Counted from the stretch's first letter, positions 7,453 through 45,809 are shown. The stretch is DNA of 64,000 nucleotides from Klebsormidium nitens (GCA_000708835.1 DF237267.1:1-64000); one strand, 5' to 3'. Made by a program: numbers and translations. Notes: generated by a model from the sequence alone, not told the origin.

Positions 7453-10400
7453 TCAGTCTTGTTGTTCTTTGTCTACCTGCAAGGGGTTATAAACAAAGTT
7501 GAAGATACCTTTTCTTGCATGCATTGGTAGAAGCTTTGCGTGACATTCCTGTTCGTGAAGGACCCACGCACAATCCGAAACTGCTCTCCTTACGAGAGTT
7601 CTCTGACACCTTCTTTAGTGTTGAGAATACCACTAGATGAACATCCATTCGGATGCTGAAAAAGACTGGCCAACGCGTATCGAGCCGGAAAACTCACTTT
7701 CAAGACACTAGCCAGAGACATCGCAAACTGACTACGGCTTTACTTGTCACCGGGGCACTGGTTACTTTCAGCAAGACATTGGTCTTGCGGCAACGGTCAA
7801 CCACGAAGTTTGAGCAAGTCGCTTCAGCGCATGAGAACAACCAACGAAAGAGCTGCTCTTGCACGTCATTGGATGCTTAAAAGCGCGAACGAAAGGCAAA
7901 AGCCAGCAAAAGATGGGACTTTACTAAGCTAGCAAGTTCAAAGGCAACGTGGAAAAAGGATTTTATCCAAAAAGATTGTCCTTATAAGATACCTTACCTT
8001 CTTAGCCATAACTCTGGCAATCGCACTACCAAGGAAGATCTGGAAGAGCTGCCCGATGAGGCCCGGAATGCTAAGTAGACCCTGGGTAGCAATGTTCGGT
8101 GTGATATACGTGATAACAGTAACGGCGACGGGCGCGGACTTTTGGCTCGACATGATGACAACCGCAATTGCCTCAACGAGCGGCAATCGGAGCAACCTGC
8201 AATTTGGAAGAAATTGCAGACCTAAGTGTTGACTTCTAAATCAAGTGATCTTGTAAGAAGCGAGGAGCCCAACACGTTCCGGGCGTCATGTTATCAGTAC
8301 CTATCGGGACTGTCAGCAAAAAGTGGGACACAGGCAAACCATTCAAAGCTGATTGCGTATGCACATCTTCAAAGATTGCGAGGTCTGTGCTAGACGGGAA
8401 TGGCTTAGCCGAAGGAGTTGACAGACAGATTGCCTCGGCGTTATTTCATGTCTTTCAGGGACTGTCATGGATAGTCTGGCTGCTGCAACAGATTTACCTA
8501 TACTTTCTCCGCACTTGTTCCAGTCCAAGGGGTGCTTTCATGACTCACCAAACAGCAGCAACGTTGAAGCCTAGGTAGAAAATGTGTAGACCAATGACGG
8601 CACATACGATGAGCATTACGTCGCCCCCGCTCTGCTTCAGGAGAATGTCCCGGGCACCGCTCAGTGTCTGCCATACTATCAACACCAGGTTACTCGTACT
8701 GAAGAGGCTCAAGGCCACCTTATGTGATTGGACGAAAGTCCGGACACGACTGCTTGTGGAAGAGGCGAACTGCACCAGGGGGAGAAACAAATGAGGGTCG
8801 TTTCCCTTACAGTATGATCAAGTGCCAAATGCAACGTTGGGAGCGTATTTGACGGTTTTTTTGGTCAGAGAACCTAATACCTGTGCCGTTCTGTGAAGCT
8901 CGAAGCGAGATCGAAAAGGTACTTGCGAATTGCGGTTTTCACTCGAAGGAAGATTCCCTCTCGCTGCGTTGGCCTGAAATGCTTCGAGAAGCCTCGAAGG
9001 AAAATTGGGGCCAAACGCACATATGTTCGCTCGTACTTTCGAATGCAAGGGAAGTTTCGACAGGGCGCCTTCGATAATTCTCTCCGAAGAGTGTCGGAAG
9101 ACAGTGCTCAAGTTGCAAAACTCTTAGCTTTGTCATCTAGAATATTCAAGAACCCCTTGTATGAGTTTCCCTGTTTAAAAACTCTGAACAAGTCGTCAGG
9201 AAGCCACCTTCGCAATCGCTCCCAGACACCTATGCATCCCGTAAACCCTTGACGAGGATTCAAGCACCCACCTTTCCGACCAGGGTCGGAACGAGGACCG
9301 TGCAAGTAAGTTTGAAGAACAGATCCAACGCGTCGATGCTAATAGTGCTACTCCCACGAAGTGTTAGCTTCAGCACGTAGGGTACAGTCAAGATGCCCAG
9401 AACGTTGGTCGAGACGGTCAGGAAGAGAGCGAGGGCTTGGTTCCCTTTGGACGCAGCAACTAGTGCGACGCCGACTCCGAGAGTGGTTGGAACAGCGCAG
9501 AAGATAGTGAGACCTGCAGGTATTGAGTAAGCCTTCGTAAATTCCTAGGGAAAAAGCGAACAAGTGGGGATTTGGACAAATCTTGAAAGCTTCATCAGAA
9601 CTGACTGCAAAATGGTACGAGAGTTGGAACTCGGTATCCGAAACAGTTGAACAATTAAACGAAGCAATCGAGAAGGTTCTAAGATCTCGTGAGGACAGCT
9701 TAGAAGATATCCCTTTCGATTCCTGTCAAAATCTGTAAAGTTTAGAGTGCGAGAACCTGTGATATTGCACATACGATATGCTTCAAAACCAAGCACATAG
9801 TAGGAACGGAAATAACAGTAGTTTTGTACACGTAATAAAAGGCAGATGATGCCACCGTCCTTTCCAGTGAGAGTCCCGTGTGCAAATTGCGTTTAACGGA
9901 AAGAAAGCATGGTTTTGATGTTGGACAGCAGATGATAGGTGACGTCTCGACTGGAACGGGGGACGTGAAAGAACTTTGACGAGAATTTGAGGGCTTAGCG
10001 GTTCTGAGAACACCTACTGTAAAGTTCGTGTGCCCTGGAGGCCAAACGAGCATGGTGCGCCAAAATAGAGTGAAGTGAAGAGATTTCGGATCTACTTGGC
10101 TATCTCACCAAAGAGGTGGCATCAGCGCAGTCAGATCAAGAAGGGACACACGCAGTGATTTCGCTCGTACAAGCGACAATATTTTGTGCGGCGTATAAAT
10201 GCTTGGAGTCCGGATGGCAGCAAGCTGAGGGAAGGGTTTATCGGAAACTTTTGCGTACCTTCCGTAAACTCCCTGGGGCGGAACGGGATCTGCTGGGTGA
10301 CAAACCCAACGCAGGGCGTCACCAGGAGGATGGTAACGATGCCATACAGGACGCCGACCCAGTTCTTGAGAGCCTCCTTCAAGTCGTTGGACTTGAGGGT

Positions 10401-14580: not shown

Positions 14581-17500
14581 TCAAACTTGGTGCAATCCGT
14601 GCCTTCGTGCGTTCCGAGCTTTCCGTTTCCGGTTCTTGAGGAGCTCCGCCTCCTTACTCGACGTGCTTTCCCCAAGAAGCCTCTCGGCAAAAGCGCTAGA
14701 GTATGACTCCTGCAAAACAACAAGGAGAGGACCTTTGTCAGAAGGGAGCATAAAGTATATTGTGAGCCCACCAGCCATAGTTCTTTTCCTACATCTCATA
14801 AGTACAGACTCGTATGCCACAGCTTTCTCGCCCTTCATTTCCCCAAATTGTAACTGCTCTCAAAACGTAAAGCGAAACGTGTCAAACGCAAACGCTTTCG
14901 TAAGCACTTCAGTTCCACGAGCGCGTAGATGACGCGGTGAAACAACACTATACTATCCTTTCTTGAGCAAGATGCAGAAGATCCTTGTACTCCTCTTGCG
15001 TCATTGCGAAATTTCATCCTGTTTATGAACTGCCATTATAAAAAATAACAAGCAGATCCTTCGGGAACTCACCTGAGACGTCCGTCGCCGGCATTGCCTC
15101 ACGATGTTGCCCCCGGCATCGATCAGCTCCCTCCCGACCAACTCCTCAGAGCAGTCCCCGAGCGCCGACTCGCTCTCCTCGGGGCTTTCCTCCGAGTCCT
15201 CACTTTCCCGAACCTCTTCCGCTTCCGCGGCGGCATTCCGCTCTGCGACGGCCGCCAGGAGCCGTCGCATGCCCCTGACGTCACTCACGGCGCCAAACAC
15301 GCCGGCGCCGTCCGTCATGTGGAGGTCAACGCTGACGAGCCCCGGTTGATCCTCTCCGAGGAGGTGTCTGTGCGACGCCGAAGTTGGGGCAGTCGTAACC
15401 GGGGGCGAGTCCGCCCGGTAACACTCCCCGGTTGGTCTGTCGCAACTCCCCGGGCAGCAGCTCGCGACGGTTCCCGCGGCGTTGTAGCAAGTCGTGTAGC
15501 CCAACAAGTAGGGGCACTCGGGGGGCGTCAGGACCGCGAAGTTCTGGCGGTACTGTGACGTCATCATCGAGCTCAGCAGGACGCAGGACTGCGTGGCGGA
15601 GCAGTCCGGGTTGCAGCACGACGGGATCGTGCCGTCGGCGTTGTAGCACGTGGTGTAGCCGAGCCAATAGGGGCACTGAGTGAGCGGCGTGTCTTGGCTT
15701 GGGGAAGGCGAGGGGGATCCCTCCGGCGAAGGAAGCGGGCTGTAAGAAGGGGAGGGGGAAGGGACCGAAGGAGATTGGGGGGATTGGGAAGGGGAAGACG
15801 AAGCCCCCGGTTGAGGAGACGAGCTGGGGGAGGCAGAAGCTCCAGAGGTTGGGCTCGCATGAGCGGACGGAGAAGGTTGAGGGCTTGACGAAGGTGACGC
15901 GCCAACGCTTGGCGAGGGTTGGGGGCTTGGGGAGGCCGACGCGGGCGGGCTCGCGGACGGCGAGGTCTGGGGGCTTTGCGAGGGTTGCGCTGAGGGCGAC
16001 GCGCGCGCGCTCGTGCGACGGCGAACCGAAGGCGACGCGCGCGCGCTGGGCGACGGCTGCGCTGACGCCGAGGGTTTGGGCGACGCGCTGGCCGACGGCC
16101 GCGGCGAGGGCGAGCTTTGGGGGCTTGGGCTGGGCGACGGAGCCGCGGCGACCGTCACCGGGATGGTCAGGTAAATGTCGGCGCCGTTCTGGCCCGGTTG
16201 CACGGTGAAAGTGGGCGACCAAGACTGCCCCTGGTAGGAGATTTGCGCCCGGTAGTCGCCGTAAAAGCCGCGGTAGGCGAAACCCGCGCCGGAAGAACCG
16301 GTCGTCCCGGTCTGCCCGGTGGTGCGCCACTCGGAGAGGAGGAGCTGGTCGACGCGCGCGCCCGAGGGCTTGTTGGAGAAATCGCCGTTAACAGAGCAAC
16401 TGGGCGGAAAGAGATAAGAAGAGATCACAACAGGTTCTGCTAAAAGGGATGCTTGTTCTCAGTGTCCTTCGGGGCTTGATCCGCTACCGTCAACTTTCCA
16501 CTGATCCTTCAAGGAAGCATCCTCAAATATCGACGCGGACGTCGAAAGCAGGAGGTCCCCGCTTCGAAGAGTCGGAAGTGGCAGAACCGCAGAGCAAACT
16601 CTAGGAAAGCATAAAAGAAACCGTTCCATATGGCGGAACACTCTCGCCGATCGTGTCTTGTGCAGGCACAGTCTTTGCACGCGAACACTCAAGTGCGTTG
16701 CGACTCATTCTCTTCGCACGGCTCACATACTGAGGACAATATACAAGCCCAGAACCATCGCAGAATAATGCCAGGTGGCCGCTTCTGCCTCTGGGACTAC
16801 ATCCGCCGGGGGCTTACACTTGACACTCGAAGGGCCCCTCCCAAACGGTCCACGCCATAATTCCGTGCACTCCGGGGTGCGCAAAATACTCCCGGTAGGC
16901 GTACTCCAAATAGTCGGCCTTGGTGTTCTCGTCCGTTTCGGACGAGTCCATCTCCGTGATCCAGATCGGACGTCCGTGGCTGGCCAGCCGGTCCAGCTCC
17001 GCGCGCAGCTTGAACGCTTGGACGGGGTTGCCGAAGTGGGACTGGCAGCCGAAGCTGACCTGTGGTTAAGAAAAATTTGGGTCTAAGTTAAGGTTTCTGC
17101 GCAAACTTCCAAAGTGGGACTGGCAGCCGAAGCTACCCTGTGGTCAAGGAAAATGGGGGTTGAGTTCAGATCCTGCGCGAAGTTTGGACGCTTGGACCGA
17201 GCAACCAATGTGGGACTGCCAGCCCGCTGACCTGCGATTCAGAACTACGGAAGGATGTTTTCAAATTGCACAGGTCCATATGCGGCGGGGCTGCAAATTT
17301 ATTCAAGATCTTAAAATAGAATTTTGTATGGTCGTTAAACGGCCCGCTCGAAGCAGAACCAAGCCGTCCTATCTCATCTGCTTTTAAGTTATCCAAATCA
17401 TGTGTCCTTTTGTGTGCGCGTATTATAAGGCGCCGAGAAGGCTGTGCAGAAAGATTCGTCTCCAGGCATCTAAACGCTATAGCAACGGAGGCAAGTCTTA

Positions 17501-20500
17501 CATAGCTTTCTGACCCGGCCCGCATACCATCTCTATACGAACTGCCCACAACATATTTCAGCGATGTTTTGAAGCAGCTTGCCGCGGACGGAACCGGGAC
17601 CTCGTGTGTAAACGGAACGGAAGCCCACCTGACTCCCCCACGCCTCGATGCTCTGCGCCTGCGCGATGAACGTGTCCGGGTTTGCGGCCGCGTCGCACTC
17701 TTCCAGGACATTAAACTCATTGATGAACATTTGGACGTTCGGGTCGAGCTGTTGGGTCGTCTGGTACATCCACTGTTGGATCCCCGAGCCCAGAAGCGGC
17801 GGGTAGTAGTCGGGGTGAAGCGCCTCGTTGTCGACGTCCCAGTGCTTGAACCGGCCCTTGTACCGGGGCACGACCTGCAGGACGGTCGATCTCAGTAAGG
17901 TTCAGGAATGATAGGCCCCCGGCTAGAATTGAAACCAAAACCCAAAAACTACCTGCTCCGCACCCCTAACCCCTCTGTATTTGCTAAACGCAGCCGTACC
18001 GCCCCGAAACTAAGCCCGCCCATCTCAAGGTTGTTGATCTTGCAGCTTGTAAGTTCTGAACTCAACTTTCGTACGTCCTGCGTGTTCTGGGCATTCATGA
18101 ATCATGGAGAGCCCCATGCATTCTTTACATAACATTCATGTACATCGCCAACATTCAAACATTCTTAGCCAACTCCAAAATGTGCCTAGCCTTACCTTGT
18201 GGCTTTGAAGGCTTTGTACAGTGGGCACGGGTGACGTATCCTACAACTCCAGCAGCAATTTGCTCCACCAGGTTTACCTTGGGGTTGAGGTGCAGTATTA
18301 TTACACTGGTGGGTGTAAGTAAAATGATTTTTTCATGGTAGACAAGTAAGCGACTTACTTGCGTGATCCGGGTGTTCATGGCCGCCCGGAGCTGGTCGGT
18401 GGGGAGTGACATCACCCAGGGCTGCTGCGCGCGCGGGCTCTCCCAGAAGACGGTGTGGCCCCGGACGGAGATGCCGTTGTTGATCGCCCAATCGGTCATC
18501 GCGTCCGCGTCACTGCAAAATTTGCAGAGAGTTCGTCAGGGTAAAATCTTGTGCTTAAGCGGATGACACGTGGCGATTATCGCCGCTTCGAGAAAGCCGG
18601 GGGGAAACTTTCGTCTGAAGCTGCTTCTGTGGACAGTTCGTCTTAGTCAGGCAGTCACAACGGATCAGCGGATCAAGTCCTCTTTTCTGTTCGTCTTAGT
18701 CAAAGACGTTGTTATCAAATTCATGAGGTTTTTCAGTGTTCCAGAAGCCCAGAGCACAGCATATTTTAGTCTGCACCTTGACAAAGTATCTGCAGATGAT
18801 TCCTTACTTGCAATCGAACTCGCTGATGTCTAGGATCCCCCAGAGAAGCGATTTTTTGTGAAACATTGAAATAGGTAGGCGAGAAAAGCAAGCATACCCG
18901 TAATTGTATTCTCCCTGTTTCCACGGCTCCGTGTGGTACCACTTGGCCTCGTTCTCGAAAACCACCCAGTTAAACCGCTGCTTAACCCAGTTTTGGTACT
19001 GGGTGTTTTGGGGGAGCTGGTAGTTGATGGCGACTCCAAAGGGGAACGCTTGCTTGGTTTGGTCGACTTGGACGTTCGCGTTAGGAACCGGGTTACCGTT
19101 GCTGTCTTGGACGTGCACGCGGACGTCCGTACGCCGGATCTGCATGCAGAGTTTTGTTGTAAGTCATTGGTGGAAGAATGCGTCAGTTGAAATATGTCGC
19201 TCGCGCAGAAAAATAAAAGAGGAAATATCCTGTCAAGAAGCGACGTATGAGCAGAGATTTACGGTTTTGGTTGTGTGTCGTGTCCCTTGCTGATGAACAG
19301 GCGGCTCGTAATAGAGAGTTTCTCCTGTGCGCCTTGTTTTCAAGTCGGTGGCTCAGAGGGGAAACCTTCATGGGTGCGGTATTTCGCAAACTTCACCGTT
19401 GCGGATAAGATATGATGTCTCTGACTTTGCGACTTCACAACGATGCTTTGCAGTAATCGGACTGCAAAGTGACATGTTTTCGAAAATCACGGATATCAAC
19501 CAGTAAACAGATGGTAATGGCTTGCCTGGTCCGTGCGCGCGTTCACGTCCGCGAGCCACGACGCGCGCGTGATGGGTTGCATGTAAAAACCCCGGATGTG
19601 AATATCCACCCCCGGGGCTGGCCCCTGGAGGTAAATGTTGACCCGGTCCGCGCCTTTCTGGTGTGTATACCCGCCGTTTAGCTGGGTCCAGCATCCCCCG
19701 GTCAGTGCGATCTGACCCCCGCAGTAGTAGTTTGTGTTTCCGCCGATCGTTACGGAGATCGCGATCGCGATCCGGGCGGTCTGGCCGGCGGGGATGGAGA
19801 TCCAGGAGGAGAGCCTGGAAGGGGTGACGTCGGCATGGCGTCAGTATGTATGCCTGTCTGAGCTGTTCACCGACAAACTGACAAAAGAGTTTCTTCATAC
19901 GACTTCAGTGGACCTGTTACCGGAGCGACCATTCTAGCATTCAGAAAGCGGAGAATGGTTGCCCAAGGATCTCATCATTTTATTCATTCCGTTGCTTACA
20001 GATTGCCGGCGCGCGCAATCAATAACTCATAGGGAAAATCATATTCAGAAAGCGGGTACTGCTGACACAAAGCCCAAGCAACTTTACAGCTTCGTTTTTG
20101 ATGTTCGCACGGGGCTGAAGCCCTTCCAAATCCAATTTGTGGGAAAGTGCGCATCAAAAGAGGATTGTACGCGACAATCGATGTCCAGAACACTTGCATC
20201 GGAGACTTACTTGTAGAATGTTCCGACGGAAAGCGATCCGGTAACGTCCCAGGAGGGGCTCGAGAACTCCTGGCCCCGGTTGGAAGCAACTACGTATGTT
20301 CCGTCACCGGAGATTCCCAGATCGACCTGGCCGAACTTGCTCCAGCCGCTGGGGACCCCGTTCTGGAAGCCGTTGGCGATGATGGTGTTGGATGACACGG
20401 GGTTGTTGAGCGAGTTGGGGCACTGCGCAAAGAATACTTCTGGTGTCAATCTCAGGCCTCTCCACCGCACAATCTGAGACTCATCCACTAACAAGCTGGG

Positions 20501-23500
20501 AAGTTATCCTCGGATTTACCTCACTAGGAGCCACCGATGCTTATCAAGCGGAGAAGCAAACCAAGAACATGGTTTGAAAGACAATAAAGTGAAGACGCAA
20601 GGAGCGTTGTGCTCGTCGGACTCTTGATTCCGCAAAGACTGCTTTTATGCACTCCGGATCACAGGAGCTTCCAATTCGCATGAACCCGTTTTCCAGAACA
20701 TGAGTAAAAAGTTTGCGTGTTCAGCGTCGTTCATCTTCTCACCATATTCCCTGGCCCCCCAGACCCGCCGCCCCCTGACGTCAGCACGATCTCAGCCACC
20801 ATGACGTATACGTCCACCCCGGACGGCGGGCCCTCCACGTACATCGTTATCGTATCGGCGGGAGAGGATACCGTATACGCCCCCTTGAGCTGCGTCCAGC
20901 ACCCGGTTTGCGCCGTACCGGACGCGACGTTAGTGTAAACGTCAGAGCCGCCGCCGAGGCTGGTGTGCATGGTGAGCTTTACCGAGGGGCTCCCCGAGGA
21001 GACTTGAAGCAGGACTTGGGCGGTGTAGGTTGCGCCTGAACGAAGAAACATAGTAACATGGATATAGGACTAGTACCAGCTTCGTGCAAAAACGACGAAA
21101 CACATTATCTTAGGCGGAGGAGACTCGGAGCAGGACTTGAGCGATGTAGATTGCGCCTGGAGGAACAATGGTTGAAGAGATCGGCACCCTGCTTTTTGTG
21201 CAGCGTTGTGCACCTTTTCGCTCTTTTCGCTAACAGGTAATCGTAACCATTTATGTTCCAAGGCAAGAATGATGGTACCCACCTCAGAAGAAGATGCGTG
21301 GGAGGAAATCTGATACAGTTGGTCGGGTACAAACGAGGTCCTTGAGTTACCGCAATCTCAACATTCTAAGAGCATAGACCGCGAGCACAGGAAACTCGTG
21401 AAAAACTCATGAGTTTCTTGGCTTAGAGAAGCTTCGCTGCTCTTCAACAGAGGCGAAAGTCTTCGCATTTTACGCACCTCAATCAAGCTTGATAATTCAT
21501 ACGTAGAGAAAACTTATCGGATCCCTTACCTTGAGAGAGTTTGCTGCTAAGGTCCCAGGACGGTCCGTTGAACGACGCCGTACGTCCGGATCCAATAGCG
21601 TATGTCTGGTCCGAAGAGATCTTGAGCTGGCAAGCGAAGCAAGACCACCCGGCGGGCGGGCCGCCCAGGAAACCCGGGCTGTAGATCAGGTTGGTTCCGG
21701 AGACGGCGTCATTGGAGGAGCCGGAGCACTGCGGAAACGGAACGGGGAGAACTTCGTTATCATCGCGTGAAAACTTGGTTTTTCTGCTTCAGAGATGGAA
21801 ATGATCTGAGAAACAAGTGGGTCAGCAGCGAACGGTAGTGGAGCGTCATCAAAGAGGTGGTTTTCAGGACATGACGAGATGTTTTGCCAAAGAAAAAAAG
21901 GAAGGTTACGACACGGGAACACCTTAATAGTCAGTCTGTAAAGACGTTCATGGGTTCTGCCGTAACCACTATGGCTGTGCTCATCTTCTTTCCAGAGTTG
22001 CATAAAGCTAGGAACGAACGAGCGGTTCTGAATCTTTCTGCGGAGTAGAGTAAGCAACCCGAGGAATTAGTCTCAAAACCGAGTAAGCTTTTAGCAACGA
22101 AATTGTCGTGCAAATGGATATATTCGACCACGATACTTACCACGTTCACATTTGCTCCAGAGCTTCCCCCGGAGCTTCCCCCTGAGCTCCCCTGCGCAAA
22201 CGCGGCCGGCGACTTCACATACTCGTCCGTTCCGCCCGGCGCCCCTTCCAAATACACCACAACGGAATCCGCCGGACCGTCCAAAGTGTACGTTCCGGAG
22301 ATCTGCGTCCAGCACCCCGCGGACGCCTGGCCCTGCCCGACCGGGATATACGTGGTGCTCGACCCGCTAGTCTTCCTCGCGGTCAGTTTCACCGTGGAGG
22401 AACCGCTAGAGAGTTGCGCGTAAACTTGGACGGTCACGGGCTGTCCGATAGAAACCCGGTTAGTGAGGTCCCAACTGGGGCCCTGGTAGGCCGCGGTGCG
22501 ACCGGTAGCTTGGGTGTAGGACCGGTCGGAAGAGAGCGCCAGGGAGCAGCCGATGCAGGACCACCCGCTTTGCGAGGATGACGTGTCAATGAGGTTGGAA
22601 CCGGTGATGCCGTTGGTGCTGGAACCGGAACACTGCAAGAGGAGATACTAGGTTTCATTGGGTGCCGAATGGATCAAATCTGTCGAAGCTCAAATTCGAG
22701 AATTGGTGAAAGATCGTCATTGCAAAATCTAAGCAATTCGTCGAGGGGATTCCAGAGAGGATTCAAAGCTTGAGAAGTGCCGTTCCCAGCCCACATCGTT
22801 AGATCTGCAATCGAAGCTGATTGGAGCGTAAGAGCATGAGAGCTCTCCTACTCCACTTATTCGAATCAAAGGAGAACAGCTTTTCGAATTGTGATGACTC
22901 GAGGCTGCTATAAAGTGGAAATCTGCCTTCACATCTCCCGCAGCAGACTTCTCGAGCCTTTTCCAAATACATTGCCGTGAAGCCGTTGGTTACGAAACGA
23001 CATTGCGAAGCAGAATACATTCGCACTCACGATGTTGCTCGGGGCCGACCCCGGTGCTGACGTGGCCGCCGGCGTCGCCGCCACGGCGGCCGGGAACAGC
23101 GCCGCCGTCTGGATATAAACGTCGCTCCCCACGGGCGCCCCCTCCAGATACATAACCAGGCTGTCGGCGGGCCCCGATAGCGTATACGTCCCCCTGAGTG
23201 TGGTCCAGCACCCGGCGCTCGCTTGGCCGGTACCAACCGGGTCGTAGCTCAACTGTCCCCCCACTGTTCGTTTCATGGTGATCGAAACCGCGGAGCTACC
23301 GGCAGCAAGTTGTACCGACACCTGGGCGGTGTAACCCGTGCCTTGCGTCAGCAGAGACGTTACGTCCCAGGCCGGCCCGGCGAACGTCTGCTGCCGCCCG
23401 GTGACGAGAATGTAGCTGGCGTCACTGCTGACGGTGACCGTGCACGTGCCGAAACTGGTCCAACCGGTCGGGAGACCGGCCAGAAAGCCCGGGTTGGCGA

Positions 23501-26500
23501 TGACGTTACCGGCTCCGGCGCCGGTGTTGGTAGAACCGGAGCACTGAAAGAAGAAGAACGGTAGTTTAGCAACGGAGACATGTCTACTGCGTTCTTGTGA
23601 CCTCGGCGAGGTTGTATTACATCAACGGCGACTATGGAGGCGGGAGAAGGACGCTTCGGAGGCCCGATTTTAATGATTTTGCTTCCGCCGTCACATAAGT
23701 GACGGGTCTAACCCCGGGTTTTAAAAACAGAGAAACCTTCCTTTCTCGAAGGTGCTGCTCTGACAAAGTACTCGGTGAGCTGCTTTTCATTGACAATCCT
23801 CGTAAAAGGCATCGGATTCGGCTTCCCTCAAAGTAGATCTTCCTTTCCTTTCCTTTGTTGAGAACTGTGAAAGGTTACCAAAGTCGATCTTACCAGCCCA
23901 TGCGTAGCGGCAGCGAACGACCGGAGCACGGGCAAAGTCTCGGCAGGGGGGTCAAACGCCGCAGCAAACGCCACCCAAACGTCCCCCCCGGAGTCCGCGC
24001 CACCGATCGAAAGCACGACGTTGCTCTCCGTGCCTAACGCCGTATACGAGCCCAGCATCTGAGTCCAACACCCGCTGACGATCATCGACTGCCCGAGAGT
24101 CGCAGATGACGTCACTCCGTCCACGGTCGTCTCCAGGAACATCTGAACGTTCTGCTTCCCGCTGGGGAGCTGCGCCCAGACCTGGAAGTTATAGAACGCC
24201 CCGGCGCTGAACTGCCCGGTTAAGTCCCAACCGGGACCCTGGTTAGCGTCGCTCCTGCTGGAAGCGACGGCGTAGGAGCCGTCGGTGGAAGGGGAGAGCG
24301 TGCAACCGCCCACGCATTGCCAGCCGGTTGGGATGCCGCTCCCGAAACCCGGGTTAGAAATGAGGTTAGCGTAGGTCGTGGACACGGGGTCGTTGGGAGT
24401 AGTGGAGCACTGCGGGGCAAAATGAAAGTCGGTTACTTGCAGGGACAGCTAATTGCTGATCGAAAGCCGAAAGGATCAGACAAGTCATATCATAGTTGAA
24501 CCTTGCCAATTTTAAATGAAAGACGGCGCGCAAGAGAAAATTGAATAAACGTGAGCTAGCCGTTCCGCAGGACGCAGCCTCAAAGCTTCGAGGCGTTGAT
24601 TCAGTCTCAGAGTGAAAGAAGAAGCACAAAGCTTCCCACAGGAAATTGCGCTTCAAGAACTCAAAAATTCTCAGATCCACCAGAATGTGCACCAACTCAT
24701 CAAAGTGTGCACACCACCCCCTCAAGCGATACACAATTGCCGACTTGATCGGAGCAAAGCCTTACATCTACACCGGCTTGCGAGGAGCTACTCTCGAGCA
24801 GAGAGCCGGCGCAGCAAGGGCTTACACAAAAGAAAGATTAAGCTTTCTCACCACATTGGTTGGAACCTGGCCCGGAGTCTGAGCGGACGACCCCCCGCTC
24901 GGCGCTGACGTGGGCGATGACGTCATTGACTCTGTGGGAGTCGGACTTGGAGAGTCCGTCCCGCTTGATGCCGGGGCATCAGTTGGAGAAGGGGCTTCGC
25001 TCGAAGACGGGCCGTTGGTTGGGGAAGGAGTGTCACTAGAAGAGGGGGTATCGCTGGCAGAGGGGGCGTCGGGGGATGAAGGGTTGTCACTTGAGGAAGG
25101 GGCGTCGGTTGGCGCGGGGGCATTTGTCGGAGAAGAAGTATCGCTGGCAGACGGGGCGTCGGTGGATGAAGGAGCATCGCTCGGAGAAGGTGCGTCACTC
25201 GGAGAAGGAGCGTCACTTGAAGAAGGAGCATCGCTCGGGGAAGGAGCGTCACTTGCAAAGGGGGTATTTGTGGATGAGGGGTCTTCGGTTGGGGAGGGGG
25301 TTTCGCTAGGAGAGGGGGTGTCACTTGACGCGGGGGTATCGCTAGGGGAGGGGTTTTCGCTGTCTGAGGGTGCTCCGGTAGGAGATGGGGAATCGCCAGA
25401 CGCCACAACCAAGTTTTGCACGACGATCACCGCAGAAGCCGGCCCCTCAGCAGAAGGCGAAGATCCGTCTCCCTTCTGCATTGTGATTGCAGACTCTGGG
25501 CCAGGGGCTGGGGCGCTCGTATCTGTCGGGGTCGGAGAAGGGGATCCCTCCGACGAGGACGGCACGTCTGTTGGGGAGTCGGTCGGGGCTGGGGTTTCAC
25601 TCGAGGCGGGGGCCTGTGCTGAAGCGCCCGGTGTTTCTGTTGGGGGAGGCGTGCTAGAATCTTCCGGCGCAGACGCGTCTGTTGGGGAGCTTGTCTCGGA
25701 AGTGGCATCGGTCTCCGAAGGGGAACTGGTTTCAGAAGGGGACCTGGTTTCAGAAGTGGGGCTGGTCTCAGAAGGCGTGCTAGTCTCAGAAGGGGAGCTT
25801 GTTTCCGAGGGGGGGCTGGTTTCAGAGGGGGGGGATGATGCGTCCGTTGGAGAAGGGGAGCTCGTTTCCGAAGGAGAACTGCTTTCCGAGACTGGCGAAT
25901 CGGTAGGGGCGGGCGCGTCTGTGGGTGCGGGGGTTTCGCTGGGAGGCGCGCTAGTGTCCGGAGGAGCGGGCGTCGGATCCAGACTGCTGGTGTCCGAAGG
26001 AGCGGGCGTTGAATCCGGACTGTTTGTGTCCGAAGGAGTGGAGGTGGAATCCGGGCTGCTGCTGTCCGAAGGTGGCGAGGTTCCACCTTGCGGATCTGTG
26101 AAAAGCAGAATGTCGTCATCAGTTGGATTACGACTTAGGTCGGGGTACCTTTCTCCAGCCCTTTAGGAAGCGCTGCTGCTTGACTTTGCTTAGCTTAGTA
26201 TGGATGCGAAGTACCTCGAATTCTACCTTTTTAGGTGCCGTCACGTATTTGGAGCTGGAAGGCTAACGGGCGGACAGAAGGAGAAAGTAATCAAGGCTTT
26301 ACTTACTGAAACCGTAGCTCAATGCAATCCGCAGCTCATTCGTCAGGGAGCTGCTTCTCTACACTAGGAATCCCAATACGAGATGATATATTTTCATGCG
26401 GATAAAACAACTCTTCCGAGCTTGTTGCAATGGCCACGAAGATGTTTCAAGGTGTGCGGCAAAGGCTCACCTTGCAACAGCGCTCTCCCCCGTCTTGCCA

Positions 26501-27429
26501 TCAGCATCTCGGGTCCCCGCATGCGTAGCTGGGCGGAAATGTCAGCAGAAGACAGCGCACCTGCACACAGAGACAAGTGCCCGTTTAGCTTTGCTGCAGA
26601 ACATTCGCAGTTTGTATCGCCGCTTTACTTTTTAATGACATCATATGGTTTTACCAGGGCAGCAGTCCGTAGGTTCTGCTCAAAGGCCTTAACGGCTAAC
26701 GACATTGAACATACGCCAATGCTTTGCTGCCTATAGGGCCTTTGAAGAAGGAGCTGACATTGATGCCGCTGTTACCCAGAGCTTAAGCTGCTATGATGTC
26801 ATCCCTCACACGTAGCTGCCATAGAGTCTCAGCATAGCCTGCTGCTTTTGACTCTAATTCTGAGACCTCATCAAGAATCGCGAGGCCTTTGAAGTAGATG
26901 GGAAGCACTCTGCGTCTATCAGCTGTGTACATTCCTTTCAGCAGTACAGGCTTTACTACAGGAAGGTAATCTTATTGCTGAAAATTCTGTTACTATCCGA
27001 CTTTCTGAACTAATACAAGTACGCCACTACATAGCGCGACAGAAGCCAGCTAGTCTGCAGTCGAATATCTCAAGGCAAAGGTGTTGGCTGTAGCCTTGCA
27101 AGTCGATAAGCATTCTCTGTTACACCAGGACTTCCTTGCCTGGCCACCAAGTAATGCCTAACCTAGTTTTCAGCAACAACTTGTTGTTCTCAAGTCTTTG
27201 CCTGACTTGCTCCTCCTGCAAGCTCCTCACATGAAGCAATCATTCAGATACGCGGAGCAAAGACCTCCAAGCCCTTCCTTTGATAAGAGTCGTCTGTCAA
27301 AAAAGAAACTGCACCCATGCAGCTAATCCTTGGAGCTTGAATCTCAGAGGCTGCCTTACCATAGCTTCCATAGCTGGCAACCGCGCACCCCACAACTGCT
27401 GCCAGCAGAATGGCCCAGACGTAAACCAT
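14581..27429 (-). CDS. Giant modular secreted GH10 endo-1,4-beta-xylanase (16 exons, 6258 nt CDS, ~2085 aa)
   Basis: Exons 27429-27360, 26560-26471, 26095-24852, 24409-23894, 23543-23031, 22632-22141, 21728-21530, 21035-20743, 20422-20211, 19814-19526, 19139-18898, 18512-18359, 17874-17629, 17059-16818, 16399-15073, 14709-14581. All junctions are phase-consistent and the total is divisible by 3. GH10 motifs: FENEAKWY, VRGHTVFW, WDVDNE (acid/base Glu), GCQSHF, IWITEMD (nucleophile Glu). Signal peptide MVYVWAILLAAVVGCAVA. Confidence 0.88.
15421..15675 (-). repeat. Two tandem 6-Cys modules in the xylanase C-terminal region
   Basis: CPYWLGYTTCYNADGTIPSCCNPDCSATQSC (15675-15583) and CPYLLGYTTCYNAAGTVASCCPGSCDRPTGEC (15516-15421). 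Confidence 0.85.
15690..16150 (-). repeat. Ser/Pro/Ala-rich (SP)n linker between GH10 and the Cys modules
   Basis: The translated frame is made of SPSPSPQ / SASASP / SAQPSP repeats. Confidence 0.85.
16150..19139 (-). other. GH10 catalytic domain exons with plant-type flanking segments (IRRTDVRVHV...FPFG; RGFYGDY)
   Basis: Both catalytic glutamates are present: NE at ~17825-17830 and ITE at ~16950-16960. Confidence 0.9.
19526..24409 (-). other. Five tandem CBM4_9/CBM22-like modules (24409-23894; 23543-23031; 22632-22141; 21728-20743; 20422-19526)
   Basis: Each module has N(L/V)I.xPxF...GW, R....GPxWD, GCWTQxxGxY and LxLEG.PxGxDxY-type segments. Confidence 0.85.
24852..26095 (-). repeat. ~415-aa acidic Ser/Thr/Pro/Ala mucin/AGP-like stalk (hexapeptide repeats SETSSP, SDAPSP, SDTPSS)
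   Basis: Single 1244-nt exon of degenerate 18-nt repeats. The minus frame is open and in phase with both flanking exons. Confidence 0.85.
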
Positions 27430-29917
27430 TGGGAAGCCCTTTGGCAAGGCCTCCCCTCCTGTGACTGACTTGCGCCCCATTGTTGTGACTGAACTTTTAC
27501 CAAATTGGTAAGCTGGTTATCCAAAGCTTATTTGACGAGGCGACAACAGGTATACCATTGAACTTGACTTCCGAGCTAGTTTACTGTGGAGACTGACTTG
27601 GGTCCTCGAAGTTAGAAGCTCAATTGCAAGCTCCTTATCGAGCTGAGAGTTCCTTAGTAGATAGAAGCTGCAAATTTGAAAGAGGAGCATGCGGAGTCCG
27701 AGAAACGAGGTGTTTCTCTTCTGTCAGCATCTGAGGATGCGGCGTCGCTCCTTTTCTAGCTTTGCTGTCCCCTCCTGACTCCCCCTTTGAGCTCTCTCAG
27801 CTTCTCACTAAGCAGATCAATGAGCTCTAGCTTGCTTTCTGCAGAACTCAGTCAAGACCAATGCTGAAAGAATCAGGTCAACTGAGGACTCCCACTTGTC
27901 GTCTCCGTGAGGAGTTGAGCAATCTGCATCGTGCGTGTCAACTCGGTCTGCAGTGGAACCTTTTTTTAATGCGGCTTGCAGACCAGCCGTTGGGACGATT
28001 GAGCTCAGCTGATCAAAGAAGAATCATAGGTTCACTGAGGTTTAGTAGCAACCTCAGATATGACGTAAAGTTCAAGCCGCAGCTCTCACCACCCATTCGT
28101 CGTGAGTTTGTATTGACTGCGGTTTCCCCTTAGTTGCACTGGTCAAGGAGGTTGTCAGATGGCCTCACAGGCAAAGCCAAGCTGTAATCTGACTGTCAAA
28201 CGCGTCTTATGTAAACCTCTTTGCACAATCTGTCATAAAGTACAAGTCTGGCAAGGTTGTATGGTCGTGCAGTCCACCAAATTCAGCATTGCGTCACCTT
28301 CAAAGATGACGTCGATTCCACTGATGGACTCCCAATGAAACAGAAGGCATGCAACGCCTTTTACCAAGCAACGTACAGATTCAACCAAGTCGGCCACTTT
28401 TCCTGTGATTGAGCTCCGGCGAGCTCCTCACGATACCAAAGGCCGCGGCCGGCCTAGCTGACGAACAGTACCTAGAGTAGTACCTAGTACCTCCTCTCTT
28501 GAAGTAGGTAATTGCTGTACATGTGTATTAACTAGGAGCCAGGACTAGGAGTGCACCTTTGAAACCGCAAAGGCGACTCGAATAGACTTAGGTATAGAGT
28601 GACCGCGTCGGACAGCACTGTACAGTTCAACGCCGGCCGGCACACCAGCCGAGTCCAACCAGTGATGCGCGAGCACTGCTAAAATACATGTGCTTAGATT
28701 CGTCGATATGGTGACATCTACGGGTAAAAGGACTCCGTCGGCACGTTTCCAAAAACCAATAAAGCACAATGATGTCATCTTGCAAGATCAATTGATAGTA
28801 TCCCTCGAAAGTGACTTGTTGAGCCCCTCATGACCGTTCGATTGTATCTTTTTTCAACCTAGTAGACGGATCTGACTGTCGCCCTGGCCAATGGTACAGC
28901 CAATTGCAAGAACACGTATTCTAGCCTCAGAGTCATGGCCGAAAAGTGCTTCGAACATTCAAGAAGTAAGTGCTTGGGATTCTAATATTATGGGTCGCGG
29001 CGCCAAGCAACGAGCTGAGAACCAGTTGGCATTTACATGGAGTCCCGCTGAGGAGCATCTGCGTCTTCGTGATCATTGACTGTGACGCCGACGAGAAAGT
29101 GACGCGCTGATGAACGGAGCACCATGGTTTTACGGCCGGATCGAAAAAACCTGGGTGAAAGCTCAATGAGGTACGTACCTTAGCCTTAGGATGCATTTTT
29201 GGCCCCTCACCTGGCAACATTGTCAACGATGGTCGGTCAGCTGGTGACTCGCTACCAGCCTGCTGCAAGAAGGTTTTGTTTCTAGGTAGTTCGGGTTTGT
29301 CCAGCTAGCCAAAGATTTACTCGTCTTCAACGCCACAGGTGTCCAGCTGATCGGTTTTCAGCTCAACTTGCCTCCTTTGTTGAGATCTCAGATACCTAAG
29401 ATTAGTGAGCTGCTACATGAAAAGAAGCTTCATTGTTACTACTTCGAAATGTGGTGACACCAGATTACCAACCCATTCAGGCAATTCGGAGTTCGCTAGG
29501 GTCAAGGAGGCGCTGCTGGCTCAATCTGAGCTCTAGAGCCGACCAAGGCTCCATCAACAGTTGGAGGACAATCCTTCCCTCTTTTCGCATTTCTCCTTCA
29601 TGTGTAATTCTGTCAACATGACAGTGGCTACCAAAAGCGGAGGGGCTTCATACGCGCATCGTTCTGGTGGGTAAATGCAACAGTATTTGTCAACGATCAG
29701 TCATGAGCTTGGCACTTTGCTCCTTTTTCACTCATGATTTCGTTTGAATCTGTTGGTCTTCCGCCTACGCGACTGCTTGTCCTCATGCTATCTGTCCTTG
29801 TATGGCCAAGCTCAGTTCCAACTTGTATCCATATGTTCCATCAGCTGCGAGTGCATAGTCAGTCAAGTTTGAATGCCACAACTGGCCATCACAAAGTCCA
29901 CTTCTGAATCCAGAACT

Positions 29918-38005: not shown

Positions 38006-39267
38006 GCCTTGGAGAGTAGTAGTTTGATGTGCAGCGAGGCGAAAGAACAGCGACCAATGCAACGCCTTGGCGACTTCAACGGTCTGAGAGCTTAAGTTAT
38101 TGCTAAATCTGTTATGAAGTTACCAGTCAAAAGCCGGACGACTTGCACGACATATTTGGCACTCGAACCGGCCGAGGAATATGGTTCACCGAGTCCTGAA
38201 CCCACGTAGTCACTCTGACCGACTGGAATTCACTAGCAGCTAGGATCTGTCTGGCGTGCGTGCCATTTTGCATCCAAGATTCTGTCTCAGTGTGCCTGTC
38301 CTATCGGCGCATGTTGAATCGAAGTAACAACTGCTAAGAAAGGGTGTATTATGACGACTCCTCGCTTTGGAGATTTTGCATGCAACCCAATCGAATATAG
38401 ATATCATGCAATACTATAAGTGCTAGATTTAGCTGGCTAGCGGCCAAATCTGATTGTTCAACGCCTAATGATTCAAAGTATGCCCACACTTACGGTGTTA
38501 TTTGAACCACCAATGCATATTGGTACCACTGCCACAAGTGTGCATTTGCCGCAGCATGATGCACAGACAAGGCATTAGTATTTCAACTTCATTTCAAAGG
38601 GACGGGGCGATGGGTAATTACCTCTATATATAGAGTTGCACTGAGCGACAATTACAATCGTTTGCACATGTCTTCTGCAACGAACCAAATTGGACACGTG
38701 TAAGTTGCGCGGTGCAAACTTGCAGCTGGGGAGATGAGTGTGGCCAGACACTCTAGGAATAATTGAAAGGGACCCGGTCAAATGCGGACGGTACGTGCGC
38801 ACCGTCATTATGATCAGCTTGAAATTCCGCCCCAACTCACAATCCAGTCAAACTTTCTGGCAAGCGCATTTGTGCAGCCATCCGACGACTCATATGTCGG
38901 GGGTCGCGGGGTTGTCACACTGTTTTTTGGGCAGTGGCATGCTTCCAACCTGTCTGGTTCCCGTCCGGTTGCACCCGGCTCTGGCTTTTACGACCGCCGT
39001 GATCCGAACCGTTTTCGAGCAGTTTTGTGGTTGTAGTGACAAAACCGGCCAGTACACCCGTCAACGTATGTTACAGAATTAGTACACAGAACAGTGTAGT
39101 AGTTCTTTGTTTAGCAACTTGCTGTGAACACGTAATCGTACGATAAAATCACTCATGTTGCTGAATCTATTCAAAGGTTTGACTTGGGCCTCAATGTGAG
39201 GCAGGCCCACATTTGCATCAAACACTCAACGCTACGCCTAACTTCCTAGGATGCAAATGACCAACGC

Positions 39268-42200
39268 TCAAACCTTGGAAAAGACCATGGGGGGCTTCTC
39301 TGGTCCTACTTCGTGGTGGTTGTACCCCCTGAATAAGAACAGCTGTACAACGTCGCCCAATTTCCAAGCGGCGCCGGACGCTGTGAGGGCTACTGTTAGC
39401 AACCCGACCCGAGCATACAGCCAATCTGCAACAAACAAACGACGAGTGAGGACAGAAGATGTTACGACGGACAAGTCAACCCTGAATAGTCGCACCACAG
39501 GTGGTTGACTTTCGAATGGTCGACAAGCAAATACGTATACGAGCTGCTGTGGTGTTGACACAACAAAGATCATGCAGTGCGGTAAACTGCATTATGGATC
39601 AAGAACCCAGAAGACATCATTGAAGAAAGTCTGACCGGCAGTCCAACAGGTTACAGAATGACGGTGCATTCGAAGAGCACCTTGCGAAAAAAAGGGACAA
39701 AGATATCAAGAATCAGCCTCAAAGCTGAAACACGCCCCATCAACTCTCGCGGAGATGCCTCAAAGCTTCTACAAAACTAAAATTAGAGAACCTTGAAAAC
39801 TTGGAACACCTGAGAAGAAAAACTTGTTGAATAGATTGTTCCCCGCCTCGTCAGCCTAATCACATGCTCTCACCAGAAAGAAACAAAGAGGTCTTCCACG
39901 CATTCCGAGTCTCCAGACATCATGTCAAGCAGGGGGAAAGCATGACCGTTGAGGGTAAACCACATACCTGGTGAAGAGAGGACCGCAGCTGATGCGGTCA
40001 GAAGCACCGCCGCAACAACCAAGCCCACTCGCAACGCCTCTATCTGTCGAAGGGCTTCCTGGCACGTCTTGCAGTGCTTCGTGTGGCCTTCATACCGGTT
40101 GAGCACTTTCTGCAAGGATGTCACACGCGGGCAACTTAGGACTGCCGGCGGATCGACGCACGTGGACATGACGCGAAGGAATATAGGCGCTCGATGCTGA
40201 CAAATTGACGGCCGACGACCAATCGTGAACCCTCTCAGCGAGTTTCCTGGGCATTCCAAACTTGGACATAGCGAGAAAGGTTCTGAACTCCCCAGCCAAG
40301 CGTCAGAACGAATGCCACGTGGCACTCGATTTCCACTTTGAAAAGCAGACCGTTTGTGTGCTGGCATTTGGGTAGCCTGTGTTAGGTACCAATCGCCAAC
40401 TCTAGTCTGAGGCCATCGCTTTTCCCAAGAAAGTGTCTTCACGACAGTTAGTCACTTGTTAAGGCGAGGCCAATAAACCCCACAACATTCTCCTATCAAA
40501 GAGCATATTGAAGAGCTTATAGTCCCAGCTGGAACAGTGTCAGTGGTTCAATCGAACACACATTCAAGCCCAACCATCTCGTCATCGAAATACCTTGAAA
40601 TTTTTCACTCGAAACACAGATCCTAGCTCATTTCGGTTTTCTAAAATGTCAAGAGTCTGCCCACTCGGACTTTGGCCTAAGGCCACGGCTGACGAAGAAG
40701 CGAAAGCGGAGGGAAAAGAAAGACGCGTATCGAGGGAAGCGCAAGAGAACCGCGTTGCAGCTCCTTCCGAGCTGCATTTGATTCGAGATCTTCTGTGAAC
40801 AAGAGTCGATCCGCTTATGACTGAATCACTCAGACCAATTGACAGTAATACCCAACGACTTGCTCGAAAGATGTTGTAGACAGCGTCCTAAAGCTTCTAA
40901 CGTTGGCTGACGCACCTCTTTCGGGAGCACTGCTAGCGGGATCTTCGGATCGACCCCCGCCGCATATTGAACGCCCCCGTGCCCAAACTTTGAGAGCCAC
41001 TGCCGAAAACCGATGACGAAGCGGTCCGAAGCGGTCGGCATGAAGTAGACTTTGTTGAATTCTTTGGCACTCGCCCCGGTGTTCGCATACTGGACTTGCT
41101 GCAAATTGAAAATGCCAGTACGTTAATGCAAGAGAAGCACTTGGAAGCAGATGTTGCACGTTATTATAAGATTTCTAGTCGCACCAGACTTTACGTACTG
41201 GATCTGCTGCAAAGGAGAGGACGTGCTACTTTGAAAAGCGGGCATTTGTTGGGAGACCGTGACGGCCCGAGTCGCCCCGTTATTACTTCTGCTCTATCGG
41301 AAACGCCGAACGAGGAAACAGCTCTGGTAAAAGCGCGGCCTCACTTGATCGAGCAGCTTTCCTTGGTTGAAGGAGAAGCTCCCTTGTGTTGAGCGATGGC
41401 AACATTGAGCATCAGCCGTGATGATCGCCCCAGCGCAAAAACCAAACAGCAAGGATGCCGGAATAGTGGCTGAGGCGTGTTTTGTCCAGAAACATTATGA
41501 AACTGATAAGGAGAAGCATTATGAAACTGAAAGGGAGAAGCGCAATCATGCGTTCTGGCCAGACAGCCCGGCGCTTACCTGCCAGTGTAGGAAGGAAGCA
41601 TCGCCATCTAAGATGTCCTGAGACTGGAGATGTGCCAACCAGCGAGGGCGCAGGTACTTGAAGTACCACGGCAACTTGACCCCGAATGCGTCAATCTGCA
41701 ACAAAAGGAATATCATGTTTGGGCGACATCGACACAAAAAGCCTCCCGTTTTGCACTTACAACAAAGCCCCGAAAAATGTGGACGAATATGTGGAAGTCA
41801 GTGAAAAGCACGAGCGGTTGGGAGAGGTGAAGTTGGAAGACAGAACGGCTTCCTTCTCTTCGCTGAAAGCAAGCTTTTAGTGAAATCACTACTTTGTCCT
41901 CAAGACCCGGCTCTGAGGGGTTCGTCTCTGTCTTCTCATTTGGATCGAGGTTCGAGGGGTTACAACGGCAGTTTTTTCAAAGCACCCCTTGGAATACGCT
42001 CCATTCAAAGCGGCACCTTCCGAAACAGATACGCATCAGTAAAACCGTAATTTCAACCGGCGTCCAACCCGGTTTCATCCATATTAGGGAGAAGTCACAG
42101 CGAGGAGACGGTGGGCCTCGGCATTTATCTCCCACCCCTCGTCTTCAGAATCGAGTAGGGTCGTCTCACCAACACAAGCCGGCTTTTCCCGGGCACTGTG

Positions 42201-45200: not shown

Positions 45201-45809
45201 TGGCACATTCTTGTCAAGGTCTTCAGGGAGTGCGACACAGTACCTGGAACCAAAGAGTCGACAATTGCAAAAGTCCACATGGAGTGCGAAATTGGTTGGG
45301 TCAAGGACCAAACAAAATAGGACTCCCATTTCCCGCTTTGGTTCACGATACTGGTCCTGTGCTCAGAAGCTTCTCATGTGACACTTGCAGACATACCTTG
45401 ATATATATCACAGAGCACGACAGAACTCCTTTTGGAAGTGCTTCGATAGAAGGATAGGTACGCACCAGTTTGCATTCCACCTGAAGTCCGACTTCTCCGT
45501 TTCAGACTCCTCATCCTCCAGCTCTGGCATCTCATAAGCTGGGGGACTGGAGACGGTTGCGTGCGTTTGCACCACCGGTCTCAGCTGTCCCCTTCGAGAT
45601 GTGAGAAGGCCCCCAGTGGCCCTACTATAAGAGTTACTTGCTCCATTGGTAGGCAAGTGTTGAAAAGCTTTTAGAAGGCTTGGGAAGAGTGGATATCTTG
45701 CAACAACCAAGGGCTTGACAGGCCTTATTCCTACATGGCTCCTTCCATGGGGAATAAAGCAACCGCTTAAACCAGATGGGAGGCAAACTCTGATGGTGTC
45801 GGACAACAT
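39268..45809 (-). CDS. Pheophorbide a oxygenase (PAO/PTC52/TIC55 family)-like Rieske mononuclear-iron oxygenase, 10 exons, likely plastid-targeted
   Basis: Rieske [11 protein letters not shown] and CSYHGW, iron-site [52 protein letters not shown] and C-terminal hydrophobic helices. The long Ser/Arg-rich N-terminus resembles a transit peptide. Confidence 0.88.
44718..44836. repeat. Perfect 58-bp tandem duplication in PAO-like intron 2
   Basis: TTCAAACAATGGATCAGCTGCATGACAACAAGTTGGATGGGCAAAAGGATGCAAGGGA occurs at 44718 and again at 44776. Confidence 0.95.

Follow-up and report, generated by a model that had tools for sequence, protein, structure and literature searches.

A stretch of 64,000 nucleotides from the streptophyte alga Klebsormidium nitens (GCA_000708835.1 DF237267.1:1-64000; hereafter the window, meaning this whole stretch) carries on its minus strand, from position 27480 to 14581, exons for a xylanase together with low-complexity and cysteine-rich regions. 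The locus raises the question of whether these parts belong to one gene and, if so, whether the gene represents a new system or a variant of a known enzyme. An earlier examination of the DNA without database searches (the sequence-only reading) had described a wall xylanase with a signal peptide, a pro-peptide, an acidic Ser/Thr/Pro (S/T/P) stalk, five modules of carbohydrate-binding module family 22 (CBM22), an intact catalytic domain of glycoside hydrolase family 10 (GH10), an (SP)n linker, a pair of six-cysteine modules and a tail, first acidic and then basic, with RxLL sites. Pfam, Protein Data Bank (PDB), composition and motif checks found all of these elements on the minus strand. The best overall explanation is that the locus probably encodes a secreted plant-type (CBM22)n-GH10 xylanase with lineage-specific additions.

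Gene Model and Conservation

The window has a GC content of about 50-59% and is eukaryotic. A minus-strand model of 16 exons, running from 27480 or 27429 to 14581, was built from stop-to-stop frames and a search for splice sites and phases, with three junctions read directly. According to the exon-by-exon check, all 16 exons are open in phase, the split codons are all sense codons and the number of internal stops is 0. The exon lengths total 6309 nt; a start at the ATG of position 27480 gives 2102 amino acids (aa), and one at the ATG of position 27429 gives 2085 aa. Fourteen introns are of the GT-AG type and one is GC-AG; its GC donor belongs to exon 10 (CAG/GCAAGC, window 19520-19526, read directly), where the orthologous locus L002 has GT. 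The 16-exon structure of the sequence-only reading held, with correct phases and splice sites, no internal stop and collinearity in L002. Its length of ~2085 aa fits the ATG at 27429; however, the start codon at 27480 appears more likely, since conservation with the ortholog starts at that Met. All searches and folds reported here were run per exon or piece, with the exons unjoined, and GH10 was scored in exon pieces, never whole. The parts of the gene are as follows.

27360-27480, minus strand: exon 1, start codon at 27480 and second in-frame ATG at 27429; from the open reading frame (ORF) and phase check
26471-26560, minus strand: exon 2, micro-exon of 30 aa (90 nt, phase 1-1) with GRALLQ; putative pro-segment
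24852-26095, minus strand: exon 3, acidic S/T/P stalk of 414 aa
23894-24409, minus strand: exon 4, CBM22-type module 1 (PF02018 E 4.5e-11)
23031-23543, minus strand: exon 5, CBM22-type module 2 (PF02018 E 9.5e-18; PDB 4XUP/4XUO E 1.7e-10)
22141-22632, minus strand: exon 6, CBM22-type module 3 (PF02018 E 8.8e-16)
21728-21530 and 21035-20743, minus strand: exons 7 and 8, CBM22-type module 4 with a phase-1 intron between them (PF02018 positions 2-63 and 54-135)
20422-20211 and 19814-19526, minus strand: exons 9 and 10, CBM22-type module 5 with a phase-2 intron between them (PF02018 positions 2-66 and 67-135)
19139-18898, 18512-18359, 17874-17629 and 17059-16818, minus strand: exons 11-14, GH10 catalytic domain (PF00331 and PDB 7D88)
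16399-15073, minus strand: exon 15 as a whole, with the GH10 end, post-GH10 segment, SP linker, two Cys modules and tail
16156-16399, minus strand: start of exon 15, last GH10 stretch and conserved post-GH10 segment of ~60 aa (..LSEW..FAYRGFYGDY..)
15697-16155, minus strand: (SP)n-type linker of 153 aa
15418-15675, minus strand: Cys modules (copies 15675-15583 and 15516-15421), six Cys each, 22 aa between them
15073-15417, minus strand: tail of 115 aa with RHLL, DVRGMR(R/G)LLA, an acidic run and a two-Cys loop
14581-14709, minus strand: exon 16, K/R-rich basic C-terminus of 42 aa and stop codon

The exon 15 donor at 15073 is strong (CAG/GTGAGT), and the exon 16 acceptor reads ..TTTTGCAG/. An end of exon 11 at 18808 was rejected, as it reads through into the intron; the ortholog and 7D88 both back an end at 18898.

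When the Cys modules and tail were compared by phmmer with 1.84e9 representative proteins, a single match emerged, P0001, which is an ortholog tail fragment located on a 93-kb metagenome contig of the Joint Genome Institute (JGI). Upstream extension of this match yielded L002, in which 16 of 16 exon blocks occur in order. In addition, a word search with CBM module 1 led to two more loci, L007 (Logan run SRR23617307) and L008 (second JGI sample), which show the same layout from the stalk to the gene end. Both contigs end inside the stalk, so L007 and L008 were compared from part of the stalk onward and exons 1-2 in L002 only. Identity of L007 to the window gene is 77-96%.

In comparisons with the orthologous loci, nucleotide similarity is limited to exons and ends at the exon edges. 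In L002, AG and GT sites stand at matching positions; exon 2, which has AG/GT boundaries in both species, is the sole stretch of nucleotide conservation within the 1.3 kb that separate exon 1 from the stalk. Exon 1 shows 67% aa identity with L002 counted from the first Met, and exon 16 shows 52% identity to L002 and L008 with the stop at the matching place. Ratios of nonsynonymous to synonymous substitution (dN/dS; Nei-Gojobori method) per comparable exon were 0.04-0.34 against L002, where dS is ~1-2 and partly saturated, and 0.02-0.35 against L007, where dS is 0.2-1.0. By part, they were 0.20 for exon 1, 0.34 for exon 2, 0.15-0.16 for the stalk, 0.02-0.16 for GH10, 0.35 for the SP linker, 0.12 for the Cys modules (two orthologs) and 0.14-0.32 for the tail including exon 16. 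This conservation establishes the predicted 16-exon structure as one selectively constrained gene, with a deduced protein of ~2100 aa. The proposal that one large gene joins a mucin-like or arabinogalactan-protein-like S/T/P region to a (CBM22)n-GH10 xylanase is borne out at this level. One point weighs against it, namely that the single mRNA is inferred from comparative data only.

It is very unlikely that the locus consists of two or more separate genes (for a stalk glycoprotein, a CBM-GH10 enzyme and a small Cys/tail protein) that merely look continuous. Such an arrangement would agree with the introns between exons 1 and 2 and exons 2 and 3, which are long for this gene (~0.8 and ~0.4 kb), and with a paralog in a related alga (see below) that has no stalk match or Cys modules. 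However, each of the 15 junctions preserves the reading phase and uses canonical sites that the ortholog retains, and no part after exon 1 opens with a start codon and signal peptide. Moreover, the loci are collinear as far as each contig goes, and the post-GH10 stretch, linker, Cys modules and tail all lie within one exon.

That the gene is a decaying or unexpressed relic is hardly credible. The Cys and tail region is indeed present in no protein of the 1.84e9-protein library except the ortholog fragment, but the frame is intact over 6.3 kb, and the dN/dS range given above applies to all comparable exons in two diverged relatives. The database gap is accounted for by gene callers taking the mirror strand of low-complexity regions. 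In the orthologous contigs they did so, and hence the Cys modules are missing from the protein collections searched. The case exposes a database blind spot, that of wrong-strand gene calls in low-complexity regions.

Mirror-strand ORFs lie across the stalk and SP linker at 24910-26166 of the window (plus strand) and at 8468-9391 and 17283-18132 of L002 (minus strand). The one in the window (418 aa) was considered as a gene and rejected as a mirror image of the stalk.

Several peculiarities of the introns were noted. Intron 12 (17875-18358) is present in the window and L007 and missing in L002 (15965-16510) and L008 (7182-7616), where exons 12-13 form one ORF; it is a gain/loss polymorphism among close relatives. 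Intron 13 contains a 52-nt, 87%-identical copy of the exon 14 acceptor and first bases (17109-17160 versus 17031-17082), 78 nt upstream of the real junction, and several such exon 14 junction copies occur in L007. A similar echo of the exon 8 start is located in intron 7 (21115-21181).

CBM22 Modules and GH10 Catalytic Domain

In the Pfam search, PF02018 (CBM_4_9) was found five times, as three single-exon modules and two modules spread over two exons each. Modules 1-3, which are whole, exceed the cutoff, as do exons 8 and 10, which encode the later halves of modules 4 and 5. The only PDB matches of module 2 were CBM22 modules of Paenibacillus Xyn10C (4XUP/4XUO); this CBM22-specific comparison covers module 2, and modules 1 and 3-5 were placed by PF02018. 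Each module is closest to the ortholog module at the same position (62-96% identity, versus 30-47% to other positions; 79-88% for module 1), which indicates that the five-fold array is old.

The exons of CBM units that begin at 24409, 23543, 22632, 21728 and 20422 have Cys as the first full codon after the acceptor (CS.. or CP..), in phase 0. Exon 15 (16398) likewise opens with a Cys codon, after a split codon. The Cys-first, phase-0 starts of the CBM exons fit module duplication through exon shuffling.

Four exons, every one of them scoring above the gathering threshold, together span profile positions 6-277 of PF00331. Among solved GH10 structures, XynA of Bacillus sp. (PDB 7D88/7D89; PMC13444322) is nearest in sequence to each of the four catalytic exons. 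Exons 11-14 match 7D88 in order at residues 57-129, 136-183, 189-243 and 267-340 (E 4e-13, 1e-06, 8e-15 and 8e-16, respectively). The likeness extends to the strand before the barrel and to the catalytic motifs. FENEAKWY, RGH..FW, WDVDNE with the acid/base Glu and ITEMD with the nucleophile Glu are present, WDVDNE aligning to WDVNNE of 7D88 and ITEMD to VTEYD. The GH10 domain is intact by sequence, including both catalytic glutamates. In contrast to the window protein, 7D88 is a bacterial enzyme of 428 aa without CBM22 modules, stalk, Cys modules or tail. The post-GH10 segment shows 85-97% identity to the orthologs and 59% to the paralog, and it has no sequence match in Pfam (E<=10) or the PDB.

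Comparison with Plant Xylanases and Predicted Function

Land-plant xylanases have the architecture (CBM22)1-4-GH10 (PMC6852159), with three CBMs in AtXYN1 (PMC3240017). The window protein resembles AtXYN1, PtxtXyn10A and maize WI5 in having N-terminal tandem CBM22 modules (PF02018) followed by a C-terminal GH10 domain, and in its secretory N-terminus and presumed role in its own xylan wall. The nucleophile motif is GRPIWITEMD here and GLPIWFTELD in AtXYN1/EgrXYN1 (PMC3240017). As the sequence-only reading had stated, the five CBM22 modules exceed the 1-4 of land plants (PMC6852159). The 414-aa stalk before the CBMs is a further addition relative to the land-plant enzymes. Whereas the land-plant enzymes end soon after the catalytic region, the window protein continues for ~415 aa more after the post-GH10 segment (153-aa linker, two Cys modules and 157-aa tail), and it is about twice the size of AtXYN1 (~102 kDa; PMC3240017).

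A paralog from a related metagenome alga (L004/L006; contig Ga0590114_0004992; P0002) has four CBM22 modules that correspond, in order, to window modules 2-5. It shares the split CBM exons, the GH10 domain, the post-GH10 segment and an RxLL-rich C-terminal tail, but it has no upstream stalk match, SP linker or Cys modules, and its 245-aa tail, unrelated in sequence, has no real Pfam match at E<=10. A TIR-domain ORF is located ~2 kb upstream of the paralog (L006 6894-7616).

The suggestion of a novel system did not survive these comparisons, as the core has an ordinary plant-type architecture and the four-CBM paralog lacks the stalk match and the Cys modules. Judged by sequence, the core is of a known type and the new parts are the fifth CBM, the stalk, the SP linker with Cys modules and the tail; the gene elaborates, in one lineage, an enzyme type already known and does not constitute a new system. 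Within the library of papers searched, none mentions CBM22 along with Klebsormidium.

The enzyme would act as a retaining endo-beta-1,4-xylanase, possibly also as a xylan transglycosylase, that remodels the substituted 1,4-beta-xylan of the alga's own wall, with the five CBM22 modules targeting it to xylan. Substituted 1,4-beta-xylan is a wall component in Klebsormidium (PMC5902652), and the GH10 genes of K. nitens number 9, as against one and none in two streptophyte algae that branched off earlier (PMC7027972, Table 1). Remodelling of its own xylan is the most likely role suggested by these data; a link to filament growth or fragmentation, raised in the sequence-only reading, is speculative. 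It is rather unlikely that the GH10 domain is mainly an endotransglycosylase that rejoins wall xylan chains and not a net hydrolase. In its favour are the retaining mechanism of family GH10, a sequence nearest to plant-like GH10 enzymes, both catalytic Glu, and the land-plant GH10 enzymes PtxtXyn10A and papaya CpaEXY1, reported as transglycosylases in work cited in PMC8866823. On the other side, sequence cannot separate a hydrolase from a transglycosylase.

The gene belongs to a land-dwelling streptophyte alga with a xylan-containing wall and an expanded GH10 family. It indicates that a CBM22-GH10 xylanase was elaborated in this lineage with a stalk, an undescribed six-Cys module and apparently protease-tagged end pieces.

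Stalk, Linker and C-Terminal Tail

The stalk consists of S 29%, P 22%, T 14%, A 10%, D 9% and E 5%, with a net charge of -56, and contains the repeated hexapeptides PSETSS and PSDAPS, which derive from 18-nt and 36-nt tandem arrays. The SP linker has S 37%, P 27%, A 14% and a net charge of +6. The stalk contains 75 [AST]P dipeptides and the linker 32, a clustering that by composition corresponds to glycomodules; a motif scan of both regions found no SPPP+ extensin motifs. According to this composition, the stalk and linker would be heavily O-glycosylated extended spacers. The description of the protein as a hybrid with a hydroxyproline-rich glycoprotein or arabinogalactan protein is overstated: the glycomodule-like dipeptides are evidence of composition, and SPPP motifs and a glycosylphosphatidylinositol (GPI) signal are absent.

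The tail has no real Pfam match at E<=10. Its two-Cys loop is conserved (GDCSEE..GRELID.GGNI..QCRRR) in the alignments with L002, L007 and L008. No C-terminal hydrophobic stretch was found (exon 16 Kyte-Doolittle 19-mer maximum -0.13), and thus there is no transmembrane or GPI signal at this end.

Six-Cysteine Modules

The two modules share the spacing C-x8-C-x9-CC-x3-C-x5/6-C, with 31-32 aa from the first to the last Cys, and are 54% identical to each other (74% at the DNA level over 74 nt). Eight module copies, taken from four loci, all keep this spacing. A regular-expression search for the pattern in six frames of the window and eight loci found only this gene and its orthologs.

Comparison of the module pair (86 aa) with Pfam at E<=10 gave no family at E<=1 and only chance matches above E 2, with no profile match to hevein/CBM18 (PF00187). 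The ESM Atlas contained no usable match, and PDB sequences matched the C-terminal exon only through low complexity (circumsporozoite protein) or by chance (AcrIE2, E 0.014). A word-index search with the Cys/tail region found none among proteins of 267-849 aa. Metagenome DNA scans with the Cys pair and the post-GH10 segment found no relatives, in a collection evidently without ortholog-bearing contigs. In databases this large, a lone module of 31 aa is too short to give a significant match; therefore, the absence of known relatives of the Cys modules is weakly supported.

The AlphaFold model of a single module (37 aa, four-sequence alignment) shows a beta-hairpin with a predicted local distance difference test (pLDDT) score of 73.7, which is weak evidence for or against a fold. 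It has no Foldseek match at E<=0.001 and no VIA-align match at Z>=2. The model of the module pair (pLDDT 56) is too poor for use. The modules resemble knottin and hevein-like peptides in the C-C-CC-C-C order with a CC pair, in small size and in aromatics near the first loop. Knottin disulfides connect I-IV, II-V and III-VI, and the loop lengths of hevein differ from those of the Cys modules. Neither the Pfam search, including CBM18/hevein, nor Foldseek and VIA-align connected the modules to these peptides. Of the Cys knots proposed earlier, two six-Cys modules without a match in Pfam or among solved structures remain, with a knot fold as a conjecture. The modules could serve as disulfide-stabilised elements for wall binding or protein docking.

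RxLL Sites and Possible Maturation

The protein deduced from exon 1 begins with a charged N-region of 17 aa, followed by a hydrophobic stretch of ~19 residues (Kyte-Doolittle 19-mer maximum 2.28) and AVA/SY; exon 1 is predicted to encode a signal peptide or a type II signal anchor. The protein contains three strict RxLL sites, one in exon 2 (RALL) and two in the tail (RHLL, RRLL), compared with 0.31 expected from within-exon shuffles (P = 0.003), all outside the folded domains. The RxLL sites reported earlier for the tail are present, but the total of three includes the one in exon 2. ERLLG of exon 16, considered as a further site, was excluded, being not RxLL. GRALLQ of exon 2 corresponds to GRSLLQ in L002. 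In the tail, DVRGMRRLLA is identical in L002 and L007, with RGLL in L008; RHLL is kept in L007 and replaced by RRLF in L002 and L008. The unrelated tail of the paralog contains RSLL, RELL, RSLL and RRLL (4 versus 0.27 expected, P = 0.00015).

The canonical site of SBT6.1/S1P is RXXL/RXLX (PMC4983112), and the processing motif of type I pectin methylesterases is RRLL/RKLL (PMC13477033). For SBT1-5 subtilases, the earliest lineages with reported members are the Coleochaetophyceae and Zygnematophyceae; subtilases of the SKI-1/S1P-like kind, in contrast, are found across the Archaeplastida, in a data set that includes K. nitens (PMC6713707). Type I pectin methylesterases and RALF/GLV precursors resemble the window protein in being secretory wall proteins in which R-x-L-L-type motifs bound non-catalytic segments (PMC13477033, PMC4983112). 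Pectin methylesterases differ in belonging to another enzyme family; here, the motifs stand at both protein ends and their cleavage is putative, and the K. nitens lineage predates the SBT1-5 expansion (PMC6713707).

Trimming at RxLL by an S1P-type subtilase is, on the evidence of the motifs, quite possible, if somewhat short of probable. The protein would enter the endoplasmic reticulum through the N-terminal hydrophobic segment, and in the Golgi a presumed SKI-1/S1P-type subtilase would cut at RALL, ~30 residues past that segment. A second cut would fall at R(R/G)LL, beyond the Cys modules. The two cuts would take off an anchor or pro-piece at the N-terminus and the acidic/basic tail at the C-terminus, in the manner of the RRLL/RKLL trimming of land-plant type I pectin methylesterases. 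The term "self-processing" used in the sequence-only reading has to be dropped, as no protease or autocleavage domain was found and the RxLL tags suggest cutting by a separate subtilase of the S1P type. Nor does "tethered" agree with the missing C-terminal transmembrane or GPI signal; only the N-terminal hydrophobic stretch could anchor the protein.

Several points weigh against such trimming. RHLL is not strictly kept (RRLF in L002 and L008), and the N-terminal site was compared in one ortholog. The N-terminus also suits an ordinary cleaved signal peptide (AVA/SY), which would make the idea of anchor release unnecessary. Purifying selection on the tail suits a mature functional part as well as a pro-piece, and the S1P-type protease of the alga is presumed from the literature (PMC6713707).

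A serious alternative, although it too is given less than an even chance, is that no RxLL cut occurs and that a normal signal peptide yields a mature wall protein of ~2050 aa including the tail. The tail and its two-Cys loop could then, for example, bind wall polyanions or the protein's own acidic stalk electrostatically, or act as a reversible autoinhibitor. The dN/dS of 0.14-0.32 for the tail with exon 16, the signal-peptidase-like AVA/SY site and the imperfect conservation of RHLL in L002 and L008 agree with an uncut protein. However, RxLL sites are enriched here and, independently, in the unrelated tail of the paralog, they are confined to inter-domain segments, and the DVRGMR(R/G)LLA block hardly varies.

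Should the RxLL sites be used, the gene would provide an accessible example, beyond the land plants, of a wall enzyme that matures through an S1P-type protease. A more far-reaching proposal combines two parts, namely that the Cys modules form a new wall-binding (carbohydrate-binding) family and that a membrane-anchored precursor is released and trimmed at RxLL by a single S1P-type subtilase; taken together, this is doubtful. If it were true, S1P-dependent maturation of wall enzymes would already have been used in Klebsormidiophyceae before SBT1-5 subtilases arose. Binding of a wall polymer by the Cys modules would found a new CBM family.

Genomic Neighbourhood

Beside the 3' end of the ortholog lies a multi-exon gene with a Rieske-domain exon (L001 12232-20004). 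It matches positions 39247-45254 of the window, which lie 5' of the xylanase gene. Both genomes share this neighbourhood, with one segment inverted between them.

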